Below are positions 15,873-35,697 of a stretch of DNA of 57,427 nt, in pieces. Origin of the DNA: Prasinococcaceae sp. CCMP 1430 (taxonomy: Eukaryota; Plantae; Prasinodermophyta); NCBI GenBank assembly GCA_013416795.1, contig RQSC01000306.1:1324-58750 (forward strand), given 5' to 3'. Position 1 is the stretch's first letter. The number at the start of each line of letters is the position of its first letter. The translations under genes were made by a program, and so were the position numbers. Below the pieces are notes generated by a model. It saw only the letters and a list, made by a program, of their open reading frames with translations, was not told the origin of the DNA and ran no database searches.

Positions 15873-16557
15873 AACCCTACCCTGAACTAACCCCGGCGCG
15901 CGCCCTCGCGGCACCGGGTGCGGGCGGGGCGGCATGGGGGGGAAGGGGGATGCGAGGGCGGAGGGGCGCGGAGGGGCACACAGCGCGCGGTGTGAAGGTT
16001 TTTGGAGGGGCCAGGGTGGTCCCCCGGCGAGGTGCGTGCGCCGGGCGCGCGCGACGCGCCGCGCTTTGGCGAACGTCGTGGCGTTCAGACGCAGCGCTGT
16101 GATCGCTTCCCCTTTTTCGAGTGATAAGGGGCGGGGGGCGTCAGCCCCGCCCTCCGTGCCCTCTTACAGTCCTCCCCCTAGCTCCCCGCGCACTATCCCG
16201 TCGCTTTATGGGGTGTGTGCCTCCTGTGGTGCTCTTCAGAAATGCAAGCATGTGGCTCTCCAACCGGTTCTGCTGGCTCTCCATCCGCACGAGCCTGTCG
16301 TTGATGGCCGCGGCAGTTCCTGCGCGAAACCCCCCCATCCCGCCCCCTCTCGCCCATGCCCCCCCTTCCACGCGCGCAGTGGCGGCCGCGCGGCGCGCAC
16401 GCGCCGCCGNCCCCGTGGCGAGGGGTGCGCGGCCGCGAGAGCGCGCGGCGGCGGGGAGGCCCGCGCGGGCGCCAGAGCGCGGGCGGTGCGCGAGGGGGGA
16501 GAAGAGGGGCGAACGGGGACGCGTAGGGACGGTGGGGGGGCGGAGGAGCCGGTGGCG

Positions 16558-19427: not shown

Positions 19428-20826
19428 CTAGGGCAAGGCCATCACAACGGCCTTCGCCTCAGCCGCGGCCGCCTTCGCATCGGCGGCCTTGGCCTCTGCC
19501 TTGGACGCAGCCTCGGCTTCGGCCTTGGCGATGGTGGCCGCCTCAGCAGCGGCCTCGGCCTCGGCAGCAGCCTCGGCATCGGCCTTGGCAGCGGCCTCGC
19601 GTTCGGCGTTGGCAGCGGTCTCGGCAGCAGCAGCGGCGGCAGCGGCGGTCTCGGCAGTGGTAGCGGCCTCCGCCGCAGCCTCGGTCTCGGCCTTGGACCC
19701 AACCAAGGTGGGCTGCACGTATCGCGCGCGCGTGTCAGCGCTGGTGGGATGCGCATCAAAGAGGCGCCAGTGTGCGTGTCAAGCGGGTGGCGGTGCGCAA
19801 GCCCGACCGACTGCTCGAGCTTGCGTGCACGAGGCGCTCTCGCGCCGGCGTACCTCGCCGTCGATGAACTCGTAAGTCACGTAGCCCATGCTATCGCCCG
19901 CCTTGGCAGCCGCCTCGGCGGCGGCGGCGGCGGCAGCAGCCACAGCTTCGGTTTGCGCTTTGACTGCGGCCTCGGCCTCGGCTTTGGAGACAGCCTCAGC
20001 AACAGCCTTGGCGGCAGCCTCGGCAGCAGCCTTCGTTGCCGAAGCAGCCTCGGCCTTGGCAGACGACGCTGCCTCAGCGGCGGTCGCCTTCGCAATAGCG
20101 GCTTCGGCCTCCGCAATTGCGGCAGCCTCGGCCTCGGTCGCAGCCTTGGCTTTCGCCTCCGCCTCGGCCTTCGCCTTCGCCTCAGCCTCGGCCTTGGCCT
20201 TCGCCTCGGCCTCGGCCTTCGCCTTCGCCTCAGCCTCGGCCTTCGCCTTCGCCTCGGCCTCGGCCTTGGCCTTCGCCTCCGCCTCGGCCTTCGCCTTCGC
20301 CTCCGCCTCGGCCTTTGCCTTCGCCTCCGCCTCGGCCTTCGCCTTCGCCTCGGCCTCGGCCTTCGCCTTCGCCTCGGCCTCGGCCTTCGCCTTCGCCTCC
20401 GCCTCGGCCTTCGCCTTCGCCTCCGCCTCGGCCTTCGCCTTCGCCTCAGCCTCCGCCTTGGCCTTCGCCTCAGCCTCCGCCTTGGCCTTCGCCTCCGCCT
20501 CGGCCTTCGCCTCGGCCTCGACCTTGGCGAGGGCCTGGGCCTTCGCCTGGGCGGCAGCCGCGGCCTCGGCCATGAAGACCTTCAGAACCTCTGGATTGGT
20601 GGCAGGAGCGGCCTCGGCCTCGGCTTCGACCTTGGCGAGGGCTTGGGCCTTCGCCTGGGCGGCGGCCGCGGCCTCGGCCATGAAGACCTTCAGAACCTCT
20701 GGATTGGTGGCAGGAGCGGCCTCGCCCTTGGCATCGGCGTTCGCGAGGGCCTGGGCATTGGCCTGAGCGGCCGCCGCGGCTTCGGCCTTGAAGACCTTCA
20801 GGACTTCTGGGTTGATGGCAGCAGCC
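19428..20826 (-). CDS. Ala/Glu/Lys repeat protein (3 x 36-aa repeat, then 15 x AEAEAKAK); intron 19713-19853; start not identified
   Basis: Open frame with synonymous third-position variation that preserves the octamer; GTACGC..GCAG intron joins [11 protein letters not shown]|PTLVGSK; stop at 19428. Confidence 0.7.
20143..20502 (-). repeat. 15 tandem 24-bp units encoding AEAEAKAK
   Basis: Counted unit by unit (plus strand GCCTTN GCCTTC GCCTCN GCCTCS). Confidence 0.95.
20521..20826 (-). repeat. Three 108-bp coding repeats (NPEVLKVF(M/K)AEAAAAAQA..)
   Basis: TTCAG(A/G)AC anchor at 20581, 20689, 20797 (108-bp spacing). Confidence 0.9.
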
Positions 20827-20964
20827 TTTGTGTCGGTCGCCCGCACGGCATCCGCGCGTGTCAGCAGCGCGCCGGTGCTGGCCTTGCCGAGGCGCAAGCT
20901 GCGCGCACCGAGCACCGCGGTGGGCGGGCGCGCGGGGCGGACGCGCTCCGCCGCGCAGGTGGCG

Positions 20965-22293
20965 ATGCACTTCAAGCGCGTGGAAGCAAGCCTGGATGTG
21001 TCGCTCCACCCTGCAGAGCTCAAAGATGCCTCCGCAGCGGTGGCGGGCAAGCTGGACGGCCTGCTGATGCGCTACAAGCCGCAGCTAGGAGGTGTGGTGC
21101 TCGCGTACTCCGGCGCCAAGGCGGCCGTACGCGACGCGCCTGCGGTGCTGCCGTACGTGCCGCACGTCGTGCTCGACGTGAGCGCGACACTCACAGTATT
21201 TTCGCCGCGCGTAGGGGAGTGCGTGCATGGGGTAGTGACCGCGGTTGGCAGCGAGCTCATCTCGCTGCTGGTGAGTGGCATCAAGGCGGTCGTGCGCGCC
21301 GACGAGCTCCGCGCCATCTCTGCGGACGACCAGGCTGGCGGGGACAAGTGGAGCTACGACCCCGCACGTCGTGTGTGGCACTGCGCATCGGATGGCGAGC
21401 GCTCGATCTGCGAGGGCTGCGAGGTCCGCTTCGTGGTGAGGGGCATTCAGGACCTGCGTGACGACCTGCTAGAGGAAGTTGAGGTGCTCGGTGCTCTGCG
21501 GCACTCCGAGGAAAGCCTGGACGCGGACGCGGCGCTCGGACGGGTAGGCGGCGCGCATGCGCGCGATGCCCCCAAGTGCGCGCCGACCACGCCGCTTGCG
21601 TCGCTCGCGACGCGAGGCATCGCCGCCAAGTCGCCCCTCATGTCGCCGGGAGACACGGGCGGCGGTAGTGCGAACGTCGCCCGCAAGCGCGTGAGCTTCG
21701 CGGCCCTGCCACCTGGCGGTGTGTCGATGCCCAACGGCGTGGCCAAAATCACGCCACTGCGCAGCAGCAGCGGCGGCGGTGGCGGCGGCAGCACTTTTGG
21801 AAAGCCTCAGGGGTCGGGTGGTGACGCCAGCGATGGCGACGGCGGCGGGAAGAAACGCAAGCGCAGTGGCAGCGAGGGCAGCGACGGCGGCGAGCAGAAC
21901 GGAGGCGCGGGCGGTGCGGGCGGCGACGGCGGCGAGGGCACGCCCGGAACCTCGAATGCGGAGAAACAGAAGAGCAAAAAGAAGAAGTACAAGGACAAGA
22001 AAAAGCGCAAGGCGAGGGAGCGAAAGGAGGGTGGCGGGGCCGGCGGCGGCGAAACGCCCGCCACGCCCGCCACGCCCGCTGCGGCCGCCAACGGCTCCGC
22101 CGCCGCGGCCAACGGCTCCGCGGCGGGACAAACGCCAGAGGAGATGCGCCGCAAGATGATTGAGGCGCTACAGAGCCAGATCGACAGCCTCAAGGCGCAG
22201 ACGACGCCCACGAGCGCAACGCCGGGCAAGTCGGGCGGAAAGAAGAAGAAGAAGAAGAAGAAGTACAAGGGCGGCAAAGGGGCGGGCAAGTAG
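20965..22293 (+). CDS. RPA43: RNA polymerase I subunit RPA43 (Rpb7-like) with a Lys-rich low-complexity tail
   Basis: MHFKRVEASLDVSLHPAEL..LLMRYKPQLGGVVLAYS..LTVFSPRVGECVHGVVTAVGSELISLLVSG; poly-Lys NLS-like tail. Confidence 0.78.
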   Translation: MHFKRVEASLDVSLHPAELKDASAAVAGKLDGLLMRYKPQLGGVVLAYSGAKAAVRDAPAVLPYVPHVVLDVSATLTVFSPRVGECVHGVVTAVGSELISLLVSGIKAVVRADELRAISADDQAGGDKWSYDPARRVWHCASDGERSICEGCEVRFVVRGIQDLRDDLLEEVEVLGALRHSEESLDADAALGRVGGAHARDAPKCAPTTPLASLATRGIAAKSPLMSPGDTGGGSANVARKRVSFAALPPGGVSMPNGVAKITPLRSSSGGGGGGSTFGKPQGSGGDASDGDGGGKKRKRSGSEGSDGGEQNGGAGGAGGDGGEGTPGTSNAEKQKSKKKKYKDKKKRKARERKEGGGAGGGETPATPATPAAAANGSAAAANGSAAGQTPEEMRRKMIEALQSQIDSLKAQTTPTSATPGKSGGKKKKKKKKYKGGKGAGK

Positions 22294-22612
22294 GGTGCTC
22301 CAGGGTAGCCCCTCCCGCCCTGCCACTCAACGTAATCAAAACTCCCCCTTCTGACTTCAGCACTGCTCGCATCTCAGTGTGGTTGCCGACGGTCGCTTGC
22401 GGGAGCGAGGAGGCGTCACGCGGCATCCCGCCGTGCATGCCAGGTGGTACTACGGTTGTTTTAATGTGCACATGAGTCGCGGCATCAGTGTGCGTGTGTG
22501 CCAGGCGCGGGCTCGGCGCTGCCGCCCGCACCACCGCCCCGCGGCACCGATTTTGTCCCGCACAATCGCCGGGCCTCCGTGTCACGCCGCGCAAAATTTT
22601 GTTGGCGCTTCT

Positions 22613-23562
22613 TCACAGATAGCCCTTCTTCTCAAGATACTCGATGACGGTCTGCGCCATCTCGGCGGGCGGCGCGAGGTCGCCGCCCTCCTCGGCGACC
22701 TGGATCTGAATCTCGGGCGTCAGCGGCTCCTCGTACGGGTCGTCGATGCCCGTGAAGCCCTTGATCTTGCCCGCACGCGCGGCCTTGTACAGGCCCTTCG
22801 GGTCGCGATCCTCGCACACCGACAGCGGGATCTTCATGTACACCTCCACGAAGTCACCCTCGGGCATGAGCGCACGCACGGCGTCGCGGTCGCCGCGGTA
22901 CGGCGAGATGAAGCTCACGAGGGTAATCACACCGGTGTCAGCGTACAGCTTCGAGACCTCACCGATGCGGCGGATGTTCTCCTCGCGGTCCTCCGCGCTG
23001 AAGCCGAGGTTCTTGCACAGGCCGTGGCGGATGTTGTCGCCGTCGAGCACGTACGCGAGCTTGCCGCGGTTGGCCAGGGCGTGCTCAACAGTGTACGCCT
23101 TTTGCGAGCGAGGGCAATCGCAGGATGGAGCGGCAGCAGGGAGGTTGTGGGGCGCGTCAGCAGGGCGACATTGCCAGCCTCGCGCGAGCGCACGCGATCG
23201 CAGCGCGATTGCAGCCCGACCGCGGCCGCGTCGCGGCCGGGTGGCGTCCGCCGCGTCAGCGGGGCGGGCAACGCACCAGCGTGGACTTGCCGCTACCCGA
23301 GAGACCAGTGAACCACAGCACGCAGCCCTTCTGGCCGAGAATCTTCTCACGGACGTCGCGCGTGACGTGCGACTCGTGCCACTTGATGTTGGTCGACTCG
23401 CCGACGTCGTACGCGGTCGTCTTCACGAAGCGCGTCGCCAGCGCGGGGAGCAGCGGCGCCGCCTGATCCCCACGCCGCGCAGTCGCACCGGGCGTGGCGA
23501 ATGCGGGCACACAGGCGGCGGGTTGGGGACAGGCGACACACGTCAGTCACGATCGCCGCCAT
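22613..23562 (-). CDS. APK: Adenylyl-sulfate (APS) kinase, 3 exons (introns 23550-23463, 23276-23099)
   Basis: [25 protein letters not shown]|[58 protein letters not shown]. Confidence 0.96.
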
Positions 23563-24632
23563 CGAGAGCGCTCGCGCCGGGCGCTCGCGCCGCCCGCGGC
23601 GCCCGCGTCGCCGCGCGCTTGCGCGCGCACCTTGGCGTCGGCCGCGCACAGAAAACACTTGACCTTCATGTACCAGTTGCCAGCCTTGACGACACACCCT
23701 TCCCCACCCCCATCCCCCATCCCACCCCACCCCCGCCGTCAACACCCCGTCAACACCCCCCGCCAGAGCATGCGGGCGCAATTCGCGCGCGCGCCGCCGC
23801 GGCGACGACGATTGGCCGATTTCCGCCGGCCCCGCAGCAGCCGCAGCCAACCAAACGTGCGAGGTCTATCCTGAAATCGCCATGCGATTACAGTACAGGA
23901 TCTCCTCGCGCTGATCAGGATCGATCCATCCACGCGCGGGCGCATGCACGCGAGGCACGCACGCCTCGCACGCGCCCAGCCAGCGGCGGGAGGTCGAAGA
24001 CGACGAACCTGCCTGCTGTACTGACTGACGGTACGCCGCACGAGCGCCCGCTGTGTCTGTGCCCCCGCGGCAGCAGCGCCGGGCGCCGACGCCTGGCTGG
24101 CGCCGTTCCCTGGCCGACCGGCTGACCGACCCACGGGCGCCGCCCCTCCATCCGTCCGTCTCGAACCCAAACCCAATCCCAAAAGTGCCCACATCGATCC
24201 ACACACTCTGGTGCACCCTCACACGCCACGACCACGACGAACACACCAAAACGCCTTCTCTCGCTGTTTGGTGGGGACCCTCTACGCGTTGAACCTAAAT
24301 CTCCGCGGCCCCGGGGGCGCGCCGCGCTGAGCTGGCGTGGCGGCCGCCGGCCGCTGCCAAAGGTGGTGCGCGGAGCGCGGTATCGCGCGCGGCGAGGAGC
24401 GGAATCCATGCGAGTGGAAATCGTATGAAAATTTGGTCGCATTGGATTCCAAATTGAAGATGAATTGATGGGATTCGGAGAGAGGGGTTCCGGGAACGCC
24501 CGCGCGCGCGAACGCGCGCGGCTGGCGGGGGGGGCGCGGCGGGCTGCGTCACACGCGGCGAGCGCGCGCGCGCGCGCCCCGTGGCGGCAGCTGGGCAGCC
24601 GGGCGGTCAAGCCGCCAGGTGGTCAGGCAACC

Positions 24633-25794
24633 ATGAGCCCGCCGGCCGCCGTAGCGCCGCCGCCTCCGCTGCCGGCGGCCGCGGCAACATTCCGCCAGTA
24701 CCGCAACGATGGGGGAGGGGGCAACGACGGTGCGCCGGGACAGAGCGCGCGACTGCGTGTGCCGACCGCCCACCTTTTCCACCCCTGCGTGTTCCGCTGA
24801 CCCGCTCGCGCGCTCCTCACCCGCGTCCCATCCTATTTGACCCCGCTTTTCCCGCGCGCGTGCGTGCGCCCGATGCTCTTGACGCGCACCCGCGCGCGCA
24901 TGCAGACCCGCGCACGGCGGTCACCTCGCGCGTGGAGGCCTTCTACAAGGAACAGCACGAGCGCCAGACCGTCGAGTTCGTGCGCGCCATGGAGGCGCGC
25001 TACACGCCTGCCCCGGCGCGTCGCGCGCCTGGTATGCCGCGCATGGGCGTGTGGGAGGCCGCAGAGCTGCTCGATACCATCATCGACGACAGCGATCCGG
25101 ACACGTCGCTCTCGCAGATCGAGCATTGCATGCAAACCGCCGAGGCGCTGCGAGCTGCGTTCCCCGGCGAGGAGCACGGCTGGTTGCATCTGACGGGCTT
25201 CATTCACGATTTGGGGAAGGTGCTGGCACATCCGGCCTTCGGATGCTTGCCCCAGTGGGCTGTCGTCGGAGACACCTACCCGGTTGCATGCGCGCCAGAC
25301 CCACTGGTGGTGTACCACGAGCACTTCGCGGGCTGCCCGGACGCGCGGGTCGAGGCGTACGCCAGAAAGCACGGCGTGTATTCGCCCGGATGTGGGCTGG
25401 ACAACGTGCACATGTCGTGGGGGCACGATGAGTACATTTACCGCGTGCTACGAGCGCACGCGCCGTGCGTGCTACCCCCCGAGGCGCTGTTCATCTGCCG
25501 ATATCACAGCTTCTACGCGTTGCACCAGCACGGCGCCTACGAATGGATGCTGACGGCCGAGGAGCGCCACACCATGCTCCCGTGGCTACGCACATTTCAG
25601 CGCTTCGACCTGTACTCGAAAGTACGTGCGCCCTTCCGCACGCGCACGCCCCCGCGTGTCCGAGCCTTCGCACGCTGACGGACAGCGCGCCTGCGTGCAC
25701 GCAGGACGACGACAACAGGCTTGACGTGCGCGCGCTGAGGCCATACTACGAGTCGCTCATCGACACGTACGTGCCTGGCGTGCTTCAGTGGTGA
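24633..25794 (+). CDS. MIOX: myo-inositol oxygenase, spliced
   Basis: FRQY.., FYKEQHERQTVEF, DDSDPD, QIEHCMQTAE, GFIHDLGKV, QWAVVGDTYPV, MSWGHDEY, RYHSFY, FDLYSK|DDDNRLD..LIDTYVPGVLQW. Confidence 0.96.
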
Positions 25795-25928
25795 CATGCA
25801 TGACCGCACAATGCAAGACCGCACGCGCTACTCAGGCAGCAGATGTAAGAAAGTCGGCGCGCACGCATTTGAGACAGAATAAGATTCGAGAGGAAAGAAT
25901 GCCGATGGGTACGCCGGGCACAGCGCCT

Positions 25929-28900
25929 TCAGTGGACGCCTTCAGGTTGCGTTGGCTTAACATGGAAGCCTCCTTGGTAGCGAATGCCTTCCTGGAGATC
26001 GGGCGGCAGGCGATGCATCTGCTGCGCCTCCGGGCAGCTCTCCTGCAGCGTGAGCGCCAGCGGCACGCCCGCGGGGCCGTACAGCGCGGCGGCCTCCTCG
26101 TTGTTGGCGAGCCCGAGACTCTTAGGGTCGGCGCTCACGACTTGTCCCAAAGGATTCACGGCGTAGCCCAAGCCCAAGCCTTCAGTTCGAACGCACACGC
26201 GCAAACGCGAGCAAGTGCAGGATAGCAGGTTCGTCAGCACGTCGATCGCGCATCGCAGTTGCGTGTGCGCGCCCGCGCACGCTCTGCGTGCACACGCGGC
26301 CCCATGTACGCGCGCGTGCGCATTCGCGCTCGGTTCTCACCTCTGTTTGGTTTTGGCTTGAGCGCGCCCAGCCTGTCCAAGTAGGCGCCCGGATCGGCCT
26401 CGTCCGAGTCTCCATCGACTTCGTCCGAATCGCCGAGTTCCTCTAGCAAGGCGTTCGCCTGCGCTGCGCTCAGCAGAGCGTTGCTGCACGCTTTCTCGTC
26501 GCCATCCGAGGGCGTACCGTCGGTCTCGGCCCCAGCCCCGGCCCTAAACGCCCCGGCAGCGTTGGCCGCAGCCTGAGACTCGGCACTGCTGTCATCTGCA
26601 GCTGCAGCATCGATTTTTTTGTCCTCGTCTGCAGAGGCGACCATACACGCGGCCCCGTACTCTGTTCCAGCCTCGCCAGCGGCCCCGGTCGGAGGCGTGC
26701 CCCTACCCCCTTGGCACCTTTTCGTGGCAACCTCAGCGGCGGACTCGATGCCAGCCTCCGCAGAGATGGCTCTAACTGACAGCCCGTCCAGCACTGCTGG
26801 GAACGCACGCCTCGCTTCCCTATCCTTACCGTCTGCAATGAGCCTCAGCACCGCGCGATACTCCTTGGCGAGCTCCCCCTCCGAAGACGCGTCTGGGTCC
26901 CACAGCGACACCCGCCCCGTGTCATCAGCGGTAAGCAGAACCTTGCCATCGGCGGAGAACGCCACGTGGCGCTGCGGCTCGCCGCAGTGCCACTCGCACA
27001 GTAGTGCCTTTGAAGCCGCTGCAAAGAGACGCAGGCTACCATCGAGTGACACCGCAGCAAAGCGCGCGCCATCTGGTGAGTAGGCCACCCCGAACCAGGC
27101 GCCACTGAAGCAGCCACCGTTGAGATGGACCTCGCCCATGCCGCGCAGCGACGACTGCACACAGCGGAGTGGTTTACCGCTGAGCGCCCGGCCCTTATGG
27201 GCGTCAATCACCGTCTCGGGCTTGCCCTCGCCAACTGGCTCACCCTTGATCTCCCACTCGACGATGGTCCCATCGAGACTTGCGCTGAGCAGGGTGTCGT
27301 ACTCGGCGCCCTCGTCGCGACCGGGCTTGAATGCAAGAGCACTGATGGCGCAGAGGTGGGCGTCGTGGTACCGCAAGATTCGCCCGGAGATGGCGCTGAA
27401 GACCAGCAGGCGGTTCTGCTGCACACGACCGGCAATGGCGCAGTGCGTGGCGAAGACCACCATGCGCCCACAGGGCGTGTACATGAGCTCGTTGACGGGG
27501 CCGGCAGTCCAACGCATGGTGTGCAGGCACTCGCCTGGTCCCTCGACATCGCCCACGAGATCCCACACGCGCACATCTTCGTCGTCCGACGCGCTGGCGA
27601 GCTGGCGGCCTGACGGACTGAACACGACGCGGTTGATGGTCTTCTTGTGCAGCGACGCCGTGGCAAGGCGTAGCAGGCCCGTGTGCGCATCCCACAGCCG
27701 GATGACGCGGTCGTCTCCCGCCGTGGCCAGGGCTGCGCCATATGCGTCGAAGGCGATGCTGCGTAGAGGGGCACAATGGCCTGCGAGCACCGCCACGCAT
27801 TCGCCGCCTCCGGACTCAACGTCGAGCAGCCACAGCCGAGCGGTTGCATCCTCAGAGGCTGTTGCAAGCAGCGTCGAGCCATCAGGGCACCAAGCAAGCG
27901 CAGTCACGGGCGCCTCGTGCCCCTCGAGTGCCGCGAGGAGTTCGCCGCTCGGCGCGCGCCACACGAAGGTCAGCCCGCTCTTGCAGCCGCCTGCCACCAG
28001 GGGCGCATCAGAGCCAGCGCCGCCGCCATTCCCCTTGTGCAGGTGTGACATCGGGTGCGGGTGGCGAAAGGCCACCGCATGCACCGCCGAGCCGGCGTGC
28101 GCGACACCCACGCGCGCGCAGCTTCGCAACGCCTCCCGAGCGCGCTCGAGCAGTGGGCCCGCGTCCGCCAGCCGGCAGCGTGGTGGCGCGGGGCCGTGTC
28201 CCCGCGCGAGGCCTAGCTCGCGTGCGCGCTCGAGTGCCTCGCGCGCGCCCGCCCACATCTCTAGCTCCAGCATGGCCTCGGCCTTGGATACGAATGCGTC
28301 CACCCACATTGGCCGTAGCGACGCAGCGGCAGCGCCGTCTGGGAGCGCCGCGAACACATTGCCGAGCGCGAGATGCGTGCGGCAGCGCGCTTCGAGCGCC
28401 TCGCTGAGCCGTGCGCTTAACTCTGCCGAAGACGACGCAGATGCGCTCTCGGCTTCGGACGCCAGCGCGCGCTCAGCGCCGTCCAGATACGCGAGCGCAG
28501 CCACGTAGTCACATCGCGCGTATGCGGCGTGCGCAGCCGACAGCATGTCCGACTCGGGCAAGTCGACTTCGCATGGGCGCGACGCGGGCGGCGTGTCGGC
28601 GTCTGCGCATCGCGTCTCCGACGACGGAGGCTGGGTGCCACTGCCGTACTCACTCGGCCCCATTTCTTGCGGGTGCACTCTCCTTGGTTGCTGCGGCTGC
28701 GGCTGCGGCTGCGGCTGCGGCTGCGGCTGCGGCTGCGGCTGCGGCTGCGGCTGCGGCTGCGGCTGCGGCCTCTGCGTTGCCTTCTGGGGCCTCGCTGCAA
28801 CGGTCGCTGCCGCGGCGGAGCCCCTACCCCTTGCCACCCCCCTGACGCCGACCCCGCCGCTACCCATGCCTCCGAAGGCCTTTGCGGCTGCAGTCGCGCC

Positions 28901-29378
28901 CTGCCGGCGCGCTGCCATTGCGCGTGCGAGTGATGTTGGTCCGCCGGGAGCACGCCAGGCAACGCCCCCGCGCCCACCTGCGCCTGCCCGAGCGCTGGCA
29001 GGGCGGTGGCCCGCGCGCGCTGCGCCTGCAGCGCCCGAGGCAAGCTCGGCCTTCGCCCATCCTTCCGAAAGTGCCTCATATGCCTTGCGGACTACATGCG
29101 CGAATAGGCGTGTGCGGGAGGGGCGCAGTGTGTGTCAGTGAGCGCAATACGACCACCGCGTGCATTCATTGCACACGCGGATGCCATGCGCCGGCGGCCA
29201 TTGCCTGCGACGAGTGCGCGCGCGCACCCCGGTCGAACTGCGCGGCGCTGCCGCCCTTGTCGGGATGGCTCTTCACGGCGAGTTTCTTGTACGCGACCTT
29301 CACGTCGGCCTCAGATGCGAAGCGCGGCAAGTCGAGTGCGCGCAAGGCCTCGCCAAGATCCATCGCGCCCGCCCCCAT
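25929..29378 (-). CDS. J-domain + (QP)n + TPR + WD40-repeat protein, spliced (intron 29226-29092; further intron near 26330-26200)
   Basis: AYKKLAVKSHPDKGGSAAQFDR-V-RKAYEALS is restored by the phase-1 intron and runs without stops into ORF 26234-28918; TPR-like helices (AAYARCDYVAALAYLD..RPMWVDAFVSKAEA); multiple GH..V..L.W/F..D...LATASED..RLW repeats. Confidence 0.78.
28691..28768 (-). repeat. 13 perfect hexamers (CCGCAG) encoding a (PQ)13 linker
   Basis: CTGCGG x13 on the plus strand. Confidence 0.95.
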
Positions 29379-30026
29379 CCGCCCACCCACTCCACCTTCC
29401 CGCCACCAGGCGCGCCCGTTGGCGCGCCGCGCGGAGTGCCGCGCCGGCGCGCTCGTCTGCGCTGTACGCACAATGCGCACGTGCACGCCGCAGCGGCGCG
29501 GGTCCCTCGGCGGAGGGATGGGAGCTGATGACGCGCTCACACGCATCCCAGCGAGCCTCATCCACACGGGGTCTCCCACCCCGTGCTCTCCTCGCGGCGG
29601 CCGGCCGGCGCCCCAAGCGGCGCAGCGGCAGCGCGCGCCAGGGGGGAACGCGCATTTCACGGCCCGCCTAATTCAGCGAGTGTTTGGAAAATAAAATTCT
29701 CTTTTGTGTTGTCAAGAGTCCGATTTCGCCTTCCGGAATCTTCTGGCGTCTTCGTAACGGCAGCGGCGGCGCGAGCGCGCACAGGGACTGCGGATGCGAA
29801 CGAAGCAGAATTAGGCAACCTACGTACACAACCTACGTACAGTACTGTACGATCCCCATCACAGACCCTCTCTAGTAGCTCCTCTCTCTACTGTAGCTAG
29901 GTGTCGTTGTGCATTCAGGTGGCCAGCATGTGCGGCGCGCGTGCGCCATCGGCAGCAGCGTGGGCGCCATCGGTAGCGGCGTGCGCGCCGGGTCTTTCGG
30001 GGCACGATCAAGCCTCAAGGACGCCA

Positions 30027-33000
30027 TCACACGAAGATCATATTGTTTTCGTTGCCTGAGTTGTCGTGTCGCGTGTCTTTGCTCCGGTCTGAGAGTGAGG
30101 AGGGGAAGACGGTGGGAGAAAGGGGTGGGGTAGGGTGGGGGTGGGGTGGGGGGTGGGGGAGGCGTGCGAGCGCGCTGCGGTGTTAGCGGCCGGAGGCATG
30201 CAGGGTGGGGAGCTCGCGCACGCCGTTCGCTCTTGCGTGTGGGCGGGCGAGGTGCGCTTCCCACGTGAGCGGTCAGCAGGACAATCTCACACGGGGCGCG
30301 CGCACGCACCCGTGATCCAGACGTCATCGACGACGAGCTTGTACATGTACTCGCCGGCAGGAAGTTTGAGCTTTGCTGTGAACGTCGCACAGCGTTGGTC
30401 ATCGTACTCGCTAGTGCGCGTCATCTCCAACCGGCCCTCCCACTCGTCAAAAGAGCCCGCCAGCTCGACATTCTTCGCCTCGCCGTGCCAGTCCACTGGT
30501 TTTGCGCATGCGAGCGCGCACGCGACGACGCTCGTGGCAGCGTGTCAGCGCGGGCCGCAGGGGCGCTCGCACGCAAGCGCTTCGCTCGCGCGTCCCTCGC
30601 GCGCGCTTGCGGCGTACCTATCACTGTTGTGAGCGCACTTTGATCGCCGTCACCCGAGTCGAAGACCACAGCCTCGATGCCGTCAAGAACCGCCGCCGCC
30701 GCAGCAGCTGCTGCCGCGGCCGCGGCCTCGGCCTCGGCCGCCTCCGCCGCGGCCCGAGCCTCAGCCTCGGCAGCTTCCTGAGCGGCTCGGGCCTCAGCCA
30801 GAGCGGCCAGGGCCTGAGCCTCGGCAGCTTCCTGAGCAGCCAGGGCCTCAGCCTCGGCGGCCTCCTGAGCGGCTCTCGCAGCAGCAGCAGCAACAGCGAT
30901 AGCCTCCGCCTCCGCCGCAGCCTTCTCAGCTTCCATCTCTGCGGCAGCGGCAGCGCTCTCACACTCGGCTATAGCCCTGGCATCGGCCTCCGCCTGGGCA
31001 GCGGCAGCGGCAGCGGCCTTGGCCTTCACCTTGGCCTTCGCGTAGGCCCGGGCCTCGGCCTCGGCCTTGTGCTTGGGGCCGTCCTCGACCTCGGTCGCCG
31101 CCCTGGCCTTGGCAGCCGTCTCGGCAGCAACAGCGGCAGCCACGACGGCCTCGGCTTTTAGCTTGGCCCTGGTAGCGGCGTCAGCGTCGGCCTTGGCCGC
31201 TGCCTTGAATGCTGCGTTTGCCTCGGCTTCGGTGGCATAGACGACGCCTCCGTTTGCCTCGGCCCAGACGTTGGTTTTGGCCACCTCCGCGGCGGTGGCC
31301 ACCTCATCGACCACTTCAACAGGGACGGCCGGCGCGGAAGGGGGGAAGGCGGCGCGCGAGGAGTCCCCCACAGCGTCGGCCCGGCCATAGGCGTCTGCGT
31401 TGGCTCTAGCCATGGCCTCGGCCTCGGCCTCGGCCTTGGCTGCCGCCACCTTTGCGGCGACGATGTCAACGTCGGACAAGCCCTGGACCCCGGACATCAT
31501 ATCTCGCTTTGTCTTGGCAGCAGCCTGCTGGGGTGTGAGTTTCCTCAAATCGAGCTGTGCGGCTTCCTCGGCTTTCGCCTTCAGCTGTGCGGCTTCCTTT
31601 TGCTCGGCCTTGGCCTTGGCCATGTTGGCCTTGGCTGCAGCCTTCGCTTCCGCCACCAAGGCCTCGGCCTTTGCCTTCGCATCAGCCTCGATCTTCGCCT
31701 GGTGCTCGGCTTCAATCTCGGCCTCGATCTCCTCCTCGGTCATCAGCGCGCGTCTCGCCTTCTTCTCAGCCTCGGCCTTCGCCTTCGCCTTCGCCTCAGC
31801 CTTTGCCTTTGCCTTCGCCTCAGCCTTTGCCTTCGCCTTCGCCTCGGCCTCGGCCTTTGCCCTCGCCTCAGCCTCGGCCTTCTCCTTCTCCTTTCGCTCG
31901 GCCTCCGCCTTCGCCTCAGCCTCGGCCTTCGCCTTTGCCTCGGCCTTCGCCTTTGCCTCGGCCTTCGCCTCGGCCTTCGCCTTCTGCTCAGCCTCAGCCT
32001 TCGCCTTCTGCTCAGCCTCGGCCTTCGTCTTTGCCTCGGCCGCGGCCTTTTCCTTCTCCTTCTGCTCAGTCTCGGCCTTCGCCTTCGCCTCGGCCTCGGC
32101 CGCCGCCTTCTGCTCAGCCTCGGCCCCCGCCTTCGCCTCGGCCTCGGCCTTCTCTGTCTTCTCAGCCTCCGCCTCAGCCAAGGCGTTGGTCTGTGCCACC
32201 TCTGCGGCGGTTGCCATCGCATCGACAACCTCAACGGGAACAGCCAGCGCGGGGCGGGGAACGGTGGCGCGCGGGGACTCGCCCGCAGTCTCGGCTCTGG
32301 CCTTGGCTTCCGCCTCGGCCTTGGCCTCGGCCTTGGCTGCCGCAACCTTCGCGGCGACGACATCAACGACGTCCTTCGTCTTCGCCTCGGGCTGGCCCAA
32401 GTCCTCCTGCTCAGCCTCGGCCTTCGCCTTTGCATCGGCCTCGGCCTTCGCCTTTGCATCGGCCTCGGCCTTCGCCTTTGCATCGGCCTCGGCCTTCGCC
32501 TTTGCATCGGCCTCGGCCTTCGCCTTTGCATCGGCCTCGGCCTTCGCCTTTGCATCGGCCTCGGCCTTCGCCTTTGCCTCGGCCTCGGCCTCGGCCTTCG
32601 CCTCGGCCTCGGCCTTCGCCTTCGACTCGGCTTCGGCCGCCGCCTTTGCCTCGGCCTCGGCTTCGGCCGCCGCCTTGTGCTCAGCCTCTGCCTTCGCCTC
32701 TGCCTCTGCCTCTGCCTTGGCCTTCGCCTCTGCCTTGGCCTCGGCCTCGGCCTTGGCCTTCTCCTTTGCCTCGGCCTCCGCCTTTGCCTTCTGCTCGGCC
32801 TCAGCCTTTGCTTTCGCTTCTGCCTCTGCCTTCTCCTTGGCCTTGGCCTCCACCTTTGCCTTCTGCTCGGCCTCGGCCTTTGCCTTCTGCTCGGCCTCGG
32901 CCTTCGCCTTGGCCTCGGCCTTCTCTTTCTGCTCAATCTCGGCCTTTGCCTTCGCCTCGGCTTCGGCCTTTGCCTTCGCCTCGGCCTCGGCCTCCGTAGC

Positions 33001-33465
33001 TGCAGCCGCAGCAGCGACCGTGGCGTTGAACTTCGCGGCGGTTTTGGCCTCTTTCTTAGCGGCCTTGACTTGGGCCTTGGCGACAGCCTCGACCTCGTCA
33101 GCCGTCGTGTCCTTTGAAGTGCCATGATTCGCGTCACGCCTCGCGCGTCAGCGGCGCAGGCACGAGCAGCGGCGCGGCGCCGGCGTGCGGGACGCATGCG
33201 GCGCAGGGGCGCGCAAGACGGGCGCACCGGGTGGGGCGCGCGCTTCGCCCTCGCGCCGGCGCACCTCCTTGTCGGGAAATTCGTACGTCACGAAGCCCCT
33301 ACTGTCCCTCGCGGCCTTCTCCTTGGCCTTCCGCTCCTTTGCCTTCTGGCGCCCGGGCACTCGGTGGCGCGCGGCTGTCTGCGCGCGGCGCGTGCGCGCT
33401 GCGCTGGAGCCGACGAACGCGCGCGCGCTGCGCGCAGCGCCGCCTGCGACCGCCGAGCTCGCCAT
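30027..33465 (-). CDS. About 980-aa protein: transit-peptide-like N-terminus, ~830-aa Ala/Glu/Lys repeat region, C-terminal CBM48 starch-binding module; 4 exons (33465-33265, 33111-30618, 30495-30310, 30088-30027)
   Basis: Exon lengths sum to 2943 nt (981 codons); CBM48 [60 protein letters not shown]; all introns GT-AG. Confidence 0.82.
32420..32576 (-). repeat. Six identical 24-bp units encoding AEADAKAK
   Basis: TGCATC anchor at 32431, 32455, 32479, 32503, 32527, 32551. Confidence 0.92.
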
Positions 33466-34493
33466 CGTGTGCGCTCGGGGGGCCCGGCCCTCCCCCTCGC
33501 CCGGTGCCACTCAACGCGCCCCCGCGCTTCTCGGTACCTCACACCCACCCCACCACCACCACCGACTCCNGCGCGCGCACGCGCGCGTGGCCGCCGCCGC
33601 CACGGTGGCGCGCTCTTTTCGCCCGCGCGCGCCGAACCCCGATTCCGATCCCGATCCGGAACCCACGCGCCGCGCCCCTCCCCGGCGGGACGCATCCGCC
33701 ATCGAACCCCACGCCTTCGGTCGGTCGGTCGGTGCGGACCACCGCCCGACCAACCTCATGTCCATGCATGGATTGAGGAGTCCAGCCACGCAGGGAATCC
33801 GTTCGACGCGCGCGGCATCCGTTCCGGATTCCGCTGTCGGTGCCGCCATCCGAGACCCATCCGCTCCGTCGTCGACGACTCGACATCCAACAACACACCG
33901 ACCAACCAACGTCATTCTTCCTTTTCAAGAATCCTCTCTCTTGCTCGTCCCCATCAAGTCCAAACAAGTCGCAACTCCCAACCCACCGGCCGGCCCGGCC
34001 CCCATCAACAAGCGAGGCAACAAGCACACGCACCCGCCAGCCCGGAAAAAAGATGAAAATTTGATGCCGGATTTGATCCCGCAGACGCCGCGGAGCTGGG
34101 TCGATGCGATGCAGACAGGACGGCAGACAGCCGAGGGCAGGCGGGCACAGGCAGGCACCTGCCGGGCTGCGTGCCCGTCCGTTGGTTGGTGCGGCGCTGC
34201 CCTTCTGACTGAGAGGTGGCACGCGCTGCGCCTGCGCGGTGCTGCGCTCGCTCGCGCCGCGCCGCCGCCCGGATCGCGGGCCAAACTCGAAGGGAGGTCT
34301 GCGCCGCGGCGCTAAAAAAAGAAAAAGAAAAAGAAAAAGAACGGTTGGTGCGAACACGAAGCGACGCCGCGCGCGCTTTCGATCGCGCGCGCCAGGCGGG
34401 ACGCGACGAGAGCCACAGAATGCCACGTCGGACATCCGACATCCACCACCACACCACCGGCGGGCGTGCGCGCGCGCGCCGGGCCCAATCCAA

Positions 34494-35697
34494 ATGCTGA
34501 TGCGCCCGCGGCCGGGCGCGGTCGCGAAAAGGAGCGGGGGCGGCCCGAAAGCGGATTCCGCGCTGGGTTCGGAGGCGCGCGGGCGCCGCGCGCCGGCGGG
34601 CGCNGCGCCGCAGGCCACGGGTGGAAAGAAGAAGCGAAAACCGCTGTCGACGAAGAAAAAGAAGAAGAAAGGCACCATGGGGACAGGCATGGCCACGAGT
34701 GCGCCGACGACCGGTGCCATCGAGCGCACGGAGCTCGAGTCGGTCATCGCCGCACTCGAAGAGGATTACCACGCGGAGCAGGCGCGCTACGTAGAGGCAG
34801 TGGAAGCGGCGGGCGGTGCGAGGCCGCGGCGCGCGGCGGTGCGGTGCGCGAACGGGGGCGACGCGGCGTATGGGAGCGGTGAGGCCACCAGCAGCATGAC
34901 GCGTGTGAACGAGAGTCTCGCCGCGCGGGAGACGGAGCTGCTTGCGCTCCAGGAGGAAATCCGCGCCGCGAGCAACGACCTCAAGGAGATGCGCGAGGGG
35001 CTGCAGGAGCAGGTCGGCGCCGCGAGGCGTCAGCTCGACGCACGGAAAGCCCAGATCGAGGCAGCCGAGGCCCACCTCGAGAGCCTCACGCCCGTCCTAG
35101 GTGAGCGCGGCGGCGCGACGGGCGGCGCGGCCGCGAGAGGCGGCCCGCGACGCGGCCGCGCGAGATCGCCGAGGCGCATGCTGCAGCGCGGGAGCACGCA
35201 TCTGACCCGCCGTCGCCCCCTCACCGCTTGCGCGCGCTGCGTGCCGGGCGCGCATCCGCGCTGCTTCGCTCGCGGACCTGCGCAGTGGAATGGAGCGGTC
35301 GCGCCCATCATGTTGAGATCTCCGGCTCTTTCGATGGCTGGACGTCGATGGTGCCGCTTGAGCGGCAAAGCGAGTTCGATTCCGAGGGCTCGGCGGAATT
35401 TTCGGTCGTGATGAGGCTCTACCCCGGCTCGTACGAGTACAAATTCGTCGTGGATGGCAATTGGCTGGCAGGTGCGTGTGCGCGCTCGACGTCTCCGCCG
35501 AGAGGTGCATTCGCGCGCGAGCGAGGAGACTAGAGGGCGCCATGAGCGAGTGCGTGTGCGAGTGCGCTGACGAGGAGATGCCGGCGCTCGCTCTCGCGCC
35601 CGCCCGCGCAGATCCCAACCAGGAAATGACGGCCAAGTCGGGCAACGTGAACAACATACTACGAGTAGTCGCGCCCGTGTCAGGACCAGCTCTTTGA
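34494..35697 (+). CDS. PTST2: PTST2/PTST3 (FLO6)-like coiled-coil + CBM48 starch granule protein; introns 35101-35285, 35472-35611; start at 34494 or 34677
   Basis: Coiled coil NESLAARETELLALQEEI..KAQIEAAEAHLESL followed by V-EWSGRAHHVEISGSFDGW..LYPGSYEYKFVVDGNWLA-D-PNQ..NNILRV, matching the PTST2/3 pattern LYPGxYExKFxVDGxW..DP. Confidence 0.72.

Follow-up and report, generated by a model that had tools for sequence, protein, structure and literature searches.

What would a green alga do with a protein in which a carbohydrate-binding module of family CBM48 stands at the end of an 831-codon exon rich in alanine, glutamate and lysine, and from what would such a protein have arisen? The question is raised by three loci, here called genes 1, 2 and 3, that lie between positions 19,428 and 35,697 of a 57,427-nucleotide stretch of DNA from Prasinococcaceae sp. 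CCMP 1430 (assembly GCA_013416795.1, contig RQSC01000306.1, positions 1,324 to 58,750 of the forward strand). We analysed this stretch as a whole and refer to it as the window, in whose coordinates all positions are given. The window is nuclear DNA of Prasinoderma coloniale, with about 68% GC and short GT-AG introns; a spliced public protein of that species (EukProt EP00793, PRCOL_00003305-RA, P0081) is identical to part of gene 2. The published P. coloniale genome has 69.8% GC and 7,139 annotated genes, and all starch-metabolism genes have been reported in it (PMC7455551), while the Prasinococcales, the order concerned, possess a large pyrenoid with a starch sheath (PMC4860620).

A preliminary description, made from the letters of the window alone, had placed at this locus a 980-aa repeat protein with a C-terminal CBM48, a divergently transcribed CBM48 paralogue, and a third gene lacking CBM48 but sharing a motif with the first. 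The splice model and the Pfam profile PF16561 bear out the first, the head-to-head arrangement and identical intron sites the second, and the motif together with the start of the adjoining intron the third, such that the observation of the loci is confirmed, far beyond chance. Our reading, held tentatively and at a little less than an even chance, is that gene 1, descended from a PTST-like ancestor, may encode a spacer or tether that is targeted to the plastid, anchored on starch and formed by a rod resembling a single helix.

Exon structure, domains and reading frame of gene 1

Gene 1 occupies 33465-30027 on the minus strand and, from a six-frame reading and the junction sequence, consists of four exons, whose coding sequence of 2,943 nt gives 980 aa, and three GT-AG introns of 153, 122 and 221 nt. 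Exon 1 (33265..33465) opens with the ATG and comprises 67 codons, encoding a basic, Ala/Ser/Arg-rich and transit-peptide-like stretch with a net charge of +11, in which the first acidic residue appears at position 44, and ending in a 14-aa motif (33306-33265). Intron 1 (33112..33264) is in phase 0 and is followed by exon 2 (30618..33111), whose 831 codons specify 41% Ala, 18% Glu and 15% Lys, hereafter the EAK frame. Intron 2 (30496..30617) is in phase 1 and lies directly 5' of V-D-W; if it is left unspliced, the EAK frame continues to a stop at 30421 and gives a product without CBM48. Exon 3 (30310..30495) supplies the first 62 residues of the CBM48, intron 3 (30089..30309, phase 1) interrupts the domain after W-I-T, and exon 4 (30027..30088) adds its last 20 residues and the stop codon.

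The spliced C-terminus matches PF16561 (AMPK1_CBM) with 69.4 bits and E 3e-19, the Pfam gathering cutoff being 26.8 bits, and its best solved-structure match is the AMPK beta CBM (1Z0N, 2F15; E 4e-08). Alignments to these two structures show that the W of GSFxxW, the K of YK[FL], the W of DxxW and the N of NN are kept in the CBM48s of both gene 1 and gene 2; we take these residues to be the glycogen-binding W100, K126, W133 and N150 of AMPK beta-1. The stop codon of gene 1 follows directly after the CBM48, such that the C-terminal domain with which AMPK beta interacts with the alpha and gamma subunits is absent; gene 1 differs from AMPK beta in architecture and in its probable compartment.

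Much of the repeat is open in all six frames, so the length of the open reading frame is no proof that it is coding. An independent sequencing run (Logan SRR22824304) yielded a 1,794-nt contig, L002, which is 98.3% identical to 31930-30140 and offers a comparison: within exon 2, 16 of the 20 substitutions are synonymous in the EAK frame, against the 25% expected if they fell at random (P ~3e-7). A plus-strand frame rich in Ser, Ala and Phe and wobble-aligned with the EAK frame scores 15 of 20, and synonymous tests alone cannot separate the strands, because the antisense frames have their third codon positions aligned. This rival frame is, however, broken by eight stops at 30641-31388, and at or below 31383 the EAK frame still shows seven synonymous substitutions out of ten. 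Besides, all three introns of gene 1 are phase-compatible with the EAK frame only, and two of the splice sites are common to gene 2. The minus-strand frame is thus supported by a synonymous bias that extends past the stops of its rival, by the intron phases and by the splice sites of gene 2, and on this comparative evidence the EAK frame of gene 1 is translated and is under purifying selection at the protein level. Long open Ser/Ala/Phe-rich plus frames with aligned third codon positions lie antisense to the EAK exons at 31400-33127 and, in gene 3, at 19888-20766, and a gene predictor could choose the wrong strand at either place.

The same observations bear on whether gene 1 is an artefact, the repeat being translated on the other strand, the repeat reading frame and the CBM48 exons being separate or decayed genes, or the product being a cytosolic relative of AMPK beta. 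The openness of the six frames and the score of the wobble-aligned frame lend something to this reading, as do the plus frame of gene 3, which holds an ATG-started open reading frame of 292 aa where gene 3 itself has no start codon, the failure to find a public protein model for gene 1 or gene 3, and the fact that the closest solved CBM48s belong to AMPK beta. Against it stand the eight stops in the plus frame, across which the synonymous bias persists, and the agreement of the three intron phases with the EAK frame; moreover, the CBM48 keeps its binding residues, no alternative upstream coding sequence was found for it on the same strand, and it ends without the AMPK-beta interaction domain. 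An artefact is the least probable of the readings considered here, with only a very slight chance of being right.

The charged rod of gene 1 and the anchorless gene 3

AlphaFold2, run on the single sequence (mean pLDDT 61), predicts about 90% alpha-helix for exon 2, with the longest helices at exon 2 residues 4-235, 295-454 and 679-817 (pLDDT about 55-77); with 0.15 nm per residue and full extension, the helices predicted would together measure ~110 nm. The predicted breaks, where pLDDT falls below 50, coincide with the Pro-rich centres of two related minus-strand modules, module A (32122..32391), which consists of a helix, a Pro-rich break and a second helix, and the hinge-like module B (31195..31494), a second copy of the same type. 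Aligned over 80 residues, the two modules agree at 52, and at 20 of these they use different synonymous codons, which indicates an old internal duplication that has probably been kept under constraint.

Two EAK blocks, at residues ~100-300 and 380-525 of the gene 1 protein and each longer than 150 residues, contain no L, I, V, M, F, Y or W and no Pro or Gly, and carry 14-23 (about 20) opposite-charge Glu/Asp-Lys/Arg pairs at i/i+4 per 50 aa, counting both directions. Hydrophobic residues occupy 0-12% of their heptad a/d positions, compared with 75% in the coiled coil of gene 2. The preliminary description had spoken of about 830 aa of A/E/K repeats; the exon does have that length, but strict E/A/K repeats without hydrophobic residues make up only ~350-400 of its 831 residues, the remainder being Ala-rich and more varied. 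In the DNA, the repeats form minisatellite-like arrays of 24 and 30 nt. No Pfam family matched the repeat exon at E 0.1 or lower, and the matches of the exon in PDB, such as the eL29 tail and the circumsporozoite protein, are compositional only.

Because about 90% helix is predicted and a heptad seam is absent, the rod of gene 1 looks like a spacer of the single-alpha-helix or rigid-linker type rather than a coiled coil or fibre, a comparison that leans on general knowledge of ER/K helices and (EAAAK)n linkers. Like these, and like the EAK16 segment of zuotin, gene 1 combines an Ala/Glu/Lys composition and i/i+4 pairs with the lack of a hydrophobic seam. Single-alpha-helix domains are usually 30-200 residues long, rich in Arg, Lys and Glu and poor in Ala; gene 1, compared with them by composition and not by a database match, differs in its ~40% Ala and in having two blocks of more than 150 residues each. 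A coiled coil or fibre, and the self-assembly proposed earlier for the EAK-repeat proteins, are thus left unsupported by the seamless EAK blocks and the long single helices predicted.

The second EAK-rich gene, gene 3, reads on the minus strand. Its exon A (19854..20825) has 324 codons in the EAK frame and runs through modules, an octamer array, an Ala-rich stretch and the motif; a GT-AG intron of 141 nt in phase 0 with an in-frame stop inside (19713..19853) separates it from exon B (19428..19712), a 94-aa Ala/Glu-rich tail with the stop codon. No CBM48 is found in gene 3. The modules are three 36-aa NPEVLKVF units at 20825-20501 (TRF period 108), and the array consists of 15 perfect AEAEAKAK units at 20145-20504, which vary at four DNA columns, all of them third codon positions. 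This octamer has the same sequence as the EAK16-II repeat.

What ties gene 3 to gene 1 is the 14-aa motif, which in both lies directly 5' of an intron (33306-33265 in gene 1, 19895-19854 in gene 3). The shared element reads DSxG[FY]VTYEFxDxE followed by GT[GA]CGCCGGCGCGAG[GA]GCG, spanning 33306-33246 in gene 1 and 19895-19835 in gene 3. Ten of the 14 motif residues are identical, five of these through different synonymous codons, and the first bases of gene 1 intron 1 and the gene 3 intron agree at 17 of 19 positions. The motif aside, BLASTP found no similarity beyond composition between the helical parts of genes 1 and 3, nor between those of genes 1 and 2. Homology with gene 1, in the motif and in the intron, makes the minus strand likelier for gene 3 than the rival plus-strand open reading frame at 19888-20766, although gene 3 would on that strand begin without a start codon. 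A relic of the RNP1 element of an RRM was considered for the motif and rejected, since the consensus fails at three of eight positions and there is no RRM body.

At its 5' end, gene 3 meets an open reading frame on the plus strand (20788-22293) with a Gly/Lys-rich tail, which we recognised by eye as presumably Rpb7/RPA43-like and which has no Pfam match at E 1e-5 or below. About 50 transit-peptide-like codons, in frame and starting at an ATG near 20815, precede the conserved N-terminus of this frame, MHFKRVEASL (20962), and run antisense to the 5' region of gene 3. Both strands can hardly be coding there; gene 3 and the Rpb7/RPA43-like gene therefore overlap or have a very short common promoter.

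The 15 perfect octamers, whose DNA varies only synonymously, raise the prospect of self-assembly, in which the EAK arrays of genes 1 and 3 would form beta-sheet fibrils or a gel-like coat and thereby cover starch with a proteinaceous layer. The EAK16 peptide derived from zuotin is reported to show a beta-sheet spectrum and is regarded as self-assembling (PMC2387071). AlphaFold2 nevertheless predicts helices for these arrays, and the dense i/i+4 Glu-Lys pairing would favour a stable single helix. Long natural segments rich in E, K and A, the zuotin region included, are helical in their native context, which also counts against self-assembly, and we consider this reading highly improbable.

The PTST-like neighbour, distant relatives and genomic setting

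Gene 2 lies on the plus strand (34677-35697, 231 aa), head to head with gene 1, the two start codons being ~1.2 kb apart. Exon 1 (34677..35100) encodes an acidic N-terminal part and then a heptad coiled coil, exon 2 (35286..35471) the first part of the CBM48, and exon 3 (35612..35697) the end of the CBM48 and the stop codon. The coiled coil is canonical and spans residues ~74-140, with 75% hydrophobic a/d positions in the best register (residues 61-130), and the CBM48 matches PF16561 with 78.9 bits (E 3e-22) and the AMPK beta-2 CBM structure with E 1e-12. The splicing agrees with the public model PRCOL_00003305-RA, which begins at Met74. Candidate start codons are at 34488, with a basic, poly-Lys stretch, at 34677, with the acidic part, and at 34896, the start of the public model, with no presequence. 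A single N base at 34604 falls within the possible 5' coding extension of gene 2, and another at 33570 within the intergenic region between genes 1 and 2.

The two introns of gene 2 correspond in site and phase to introns 2 and 3 of gene 1, the one in phase 1 right before V-[DE]-W and the other in phase 1 after W-[IL]-[TA], and identity between the first CBM48 exons of genes 1 and 2 is 41%. Genes 1 and 2 are old paralogues in inverted orientation. An orthologue of gene 2 in which the internal intron occupies the same site and the last exon is conserved lies on a 769-nt metagenome contig of 64% GC from another species (L001).

Members of the PTST family have a coiled coil and a C-terminal CBM48; PTST1, which recruits GBSS to starch, has orthologues in chlorophytes (PMC4339375). 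Gene 2, with a coiled coil and then a C-terminal CBM48, shows both family features and has exactly the short layout of Arabidopsis PTST1 (At5g39790), a non-catalytic helical region followed by a C-terminal CBM48, although no transit peptide is evident. It is best described as PTST1-like by layout, an assignment made from architecture rather than phylogeny. The earlier label 'PTST2-like' is a misnomer, since PTST1 is found in Chlorophyta and PTST2 and PTST3 are reported only from Streptophyta (preprint 10.1101/2024.10.03.616402). Gene 1 shares with the family the C-terminal CBM48 only; in place of a coiled coil of ~50-70 aa it has an 830-aa heptad-free helical region of Ala, Glu and Lys, in whose EAK blocks hydrophobic residues are scarce at a/d, and it adds the N-terminal motif and the two hinge modules.

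This kinship makes the main alternative a conservative one, in which gene 1 encodes a PTST-type adaptor that brings a starch enzyme, GBSS or another synthase, to the granule, and the A/E/K region is a lineage-specific low-complexity expansion with little function in a genome of 70% GC. The paralogy with a PTST-like gene, seen in the common intron sites and the 41% CBM48 identity, speaks for it, as does the definition of the family by a helical region and a C-terminal CBM48, with PTST1 existing outside land plants; the 24-nt and 30-nt minisatellite-like arrays and the likeness of the helical parts of genes 1, 2 and 3 in composition only would also fit. The repeat region is, however, under protein-level purifying selection, gene 1 lacks the heptad hydrophobic seam that mediates binding between PTST and enzyme, and the conservation of the hinge modules and of the N-terminal motif speaks against mere filler. 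We judge the adaptor reading a serious one, if on balance unlikely. The preliminary description had itself held that a known AMPK-beta/PTST orthologue with a low-complexity insertion would speak against its view, and the evidence goes part of that way, gene 1 being a paralogue of the PTST-like gene 2.

An exhaustive HMMER search with the CBM48 exon of gene 1 against 1.84 billion representative proteins gave 234 matches. Close matches were confined to unspliced pieces of gene 1 itself in Tara and Logan assemblies, and the only single-domain relatives are gene 2 (42%) and its orthologue (49%); the remaining matches that we inspected all look like bacterial proteins with multiple CBM48s. The earlier proposal to look for relatives that combine CBM48 with A/E/K-rich regions led to none with A+E+K above 30% among the best 150 of the 234 matches, and the search returned no named plant PTST. 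The nearest relatives of the gene 1 CBM48 in this search include four proteins of 4,364-6,207 aa with 9-14 CBM48-like stretches (P0002, P0004, P0008 and P0018). A word-indexed search with gene 1 exon 2 (the non-repeat region 525-660), gene 2 and the gene 3 modules returned the query itself only, blanks that are weak evidence given that low-complexity words swamp the candidates and that length limits apply. In the JGI metagenomes, a degenerate form of the motif had zero matches, and a CBM48 alignment gave two low-GC AMPK-beta-like matches and nothing relevant. Genes 1 and 3 seem to be unannotated, or modelled differently, in the public proteome. The earlier impression that the architecture belongs to no described family has held up, in that we found no described family or database relative with this layout.

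Contigs from Tara Oceans and other marine metagenomes (L003-L012) are 97.5-99.8% identical to the 3' region of gene 1. Their presence in many Tara Oceans metagenomes means that close relatives of the strain are widespread in the sea. Two of them, L003 and L004, have a common 13-nt deletion in the 3' flank of gene 1 (29829-29841).

By Pfam, the neighbouring genes encode an RWP-RK/PB1 protein, an ABC1 kinase, an ATG2-like protein, a myo-inositol oxygenase (MIOX), a WD40 protein and an RCC1/BRX protein, none of which is starch-related. The myo-inositol oxygenase gene (24581-25678, plus strand; PF05153, E 9e-87) lies between gene 3 and gene 1, and a minus-strand gene at 22613-23510, recognised by eye, is presumably an APS kinase. 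With these two housekeeping genes in between, the three loci do not belong to any larger cluster of starch genes. Outside the three loci, no A/E/K-rich block was found in any frame of the whole window. Near the N-terminus of the 894-aa WD40 protein (26234-28918, minus strand), a perfect (GCTGCG)x13 array at 28690-28769 gives a (Pro-Gln)n run. Besides longer runs of N, the window holds single N bases at 16410 and 44478 in addition to the two near gene 2.

A proposed spacer or tether on the starch surface

If the preferred reading of gene 1 as a starch-anchored spacer or tether is right, its product would probably be imported into the plastid and bind starch or another alpha-glucan, with the C-terminal CBM48 anchoring it to the polysaccharide. 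From this anchor would extend a segmented, charged, Ala-rich helix, broken by the two Pro-rich hinge modules and capped by the 14-aa motif. With the CBM48 end on starch, the motif and the hinge modules could hold a partner or merely keep a fixed distance. Such a protein may have arisen by inverted duplication of the PTST-like gene 2, a long polyampholyte helix replacing the short heptad coiled coil. Gene 3, with the motif and an EAK helix but no anchor, would perhaps supply a soluble partner or competitor. For gene 1, we infer plastid import, binding to starch in vivo, a role as spacer or tether and whatever link there may be to a pyrenoid sheath; for genes 2 and 3, judged from their predicted N-termini, plastid targeting is doubtful.

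Several findings weigh against this reading. The joining of exon 2 to exon 3, on which the union of rod and anchor depends, is deduced from phase and paralogy, and the AlphaFold model of the rod is a single-sequence one of moderate confidence. Short EAK16 peptides are known as beta-sheet formers (PMC2387071), which makes the helical conformation less certain in vivo. No partner-binding or Rubisco-binding motif was identified in gene 1, and its mature protein is net acidic (~-40), unlike the known basic Rubisco linkers. Searches of the 90%-identity and 50%-identity protein collections gave no model of gene 1, and no orthologue of gene 1 outside near-identical strains was found in our searches. 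None of the three possible starts of gene 2 is clearly transit-peptide-like, and gene 3 has no in-frame ATG before a Met inside module 2, the search for an upstream exon having yielded a sole ATG (20851), which is out of frame. Single-base assembly uncertainty could be the cause of this missing start codon.

The nearest functional counterparts are the pyrenoid proteins of other green algae. In Chlamydomonas, SAGA1 and SAGA2 carry a CBM20, a long helical region and Rubisco-binding motifs, and localise the starch sheath; the field expects lineage-specific CBM-bearing tethers, and the SAGA authors predict non-homologous equivalents in other algae that join a CBM to the local Rubisco-binding motif (PMC13167743). 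In Chlorella sorokiniana, PMST, with a CBM20 and six linker-type motifs, is a case of such convergence. These proteins, for which a link between starch and the Rubisco matrix has been proposed or demonstrated, resemble gene 1 in that they come from green algae with a pyrenoid and join a CBM to a very long stretch that is not globular. They differ in having an N-terminal CBM20 where gene 1 has a C-terminal CBM48, in the absence of sequence homology, and in Rubisco-binding motifs common with the local linker, of which none was identified in gene 1. The long regions differ as well, being helices of the coiled-coil type in SAGA, disordered in PMST, and a charged rod resembling a single alpha-helix in gene 1.

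Gene 1 could accordingly be a tether between the pyrenoid matrix and the starch sheath, an analogue of SAGA1/SAGA2 or PMST whose motif and hinge modules bind Rubisco or its linker, which would be a special case of the spacer or tether reading. The starch-sheathed pyrenoid of the order (PMC4860620), the prediction of non-homologous CBM-bearing equivalents (PMC13167743), the convergence shown by PMST, and the conserved short modules together with the motif common to genes 1 and 3 are all in keeping with it. Yet no motif in common with any Rubisco linker was identified; the KKPAFSFG-type sticker is absent from genes 1-3; the gene 1 protein is acidic; and our searches found no orthologues in other pyrenoid-bearing algae. 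Our literature search found no CBM48-based pyrenoid tether. We hold a matrix-to-sheath tether to be improbable.

A bolder version would make genes 1 and 3 a lineage-specific system of an early-branching green phylum, in which a CBM48-anchored 'ruler' of ~100 nm, a polyampholyte single helix, and an anchorless partner would use the motif and the hinge modules to control how far the pyrenoid starch sheath stands from the Rubisco matrix or envelope, or how it is attached there. Such a system is distinctly improbable and put forward as speculation. Were it true, it would be an independently evolved and mechanistically different answer to the problem that SAGA1 and SAGA2 solve, and a natural structural use of the EAK16 sequence. 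Should gene 1 be merely a PTST paralogue with an expanded helix, the outcome would be a useful annotation correction and little more.

Of the proteins known to take part in placing and shaping the pyrenoid starch sheath, SAGA1/2 and PMST are each restricted to single lineages. The locus described here is a concrete, previously undescribed candidate in the Prasinodermophyta, the sister group of all other green plants. It suggests that a PTST-type CBM48 gene can become a very long charged helical rod, which would be a new way of joining an anchor to a spacer, and it holds a natural array of EAK16, a peptide known from biomaterials, whose protein sequence has been kept perfect while the DNA beneath it varies.

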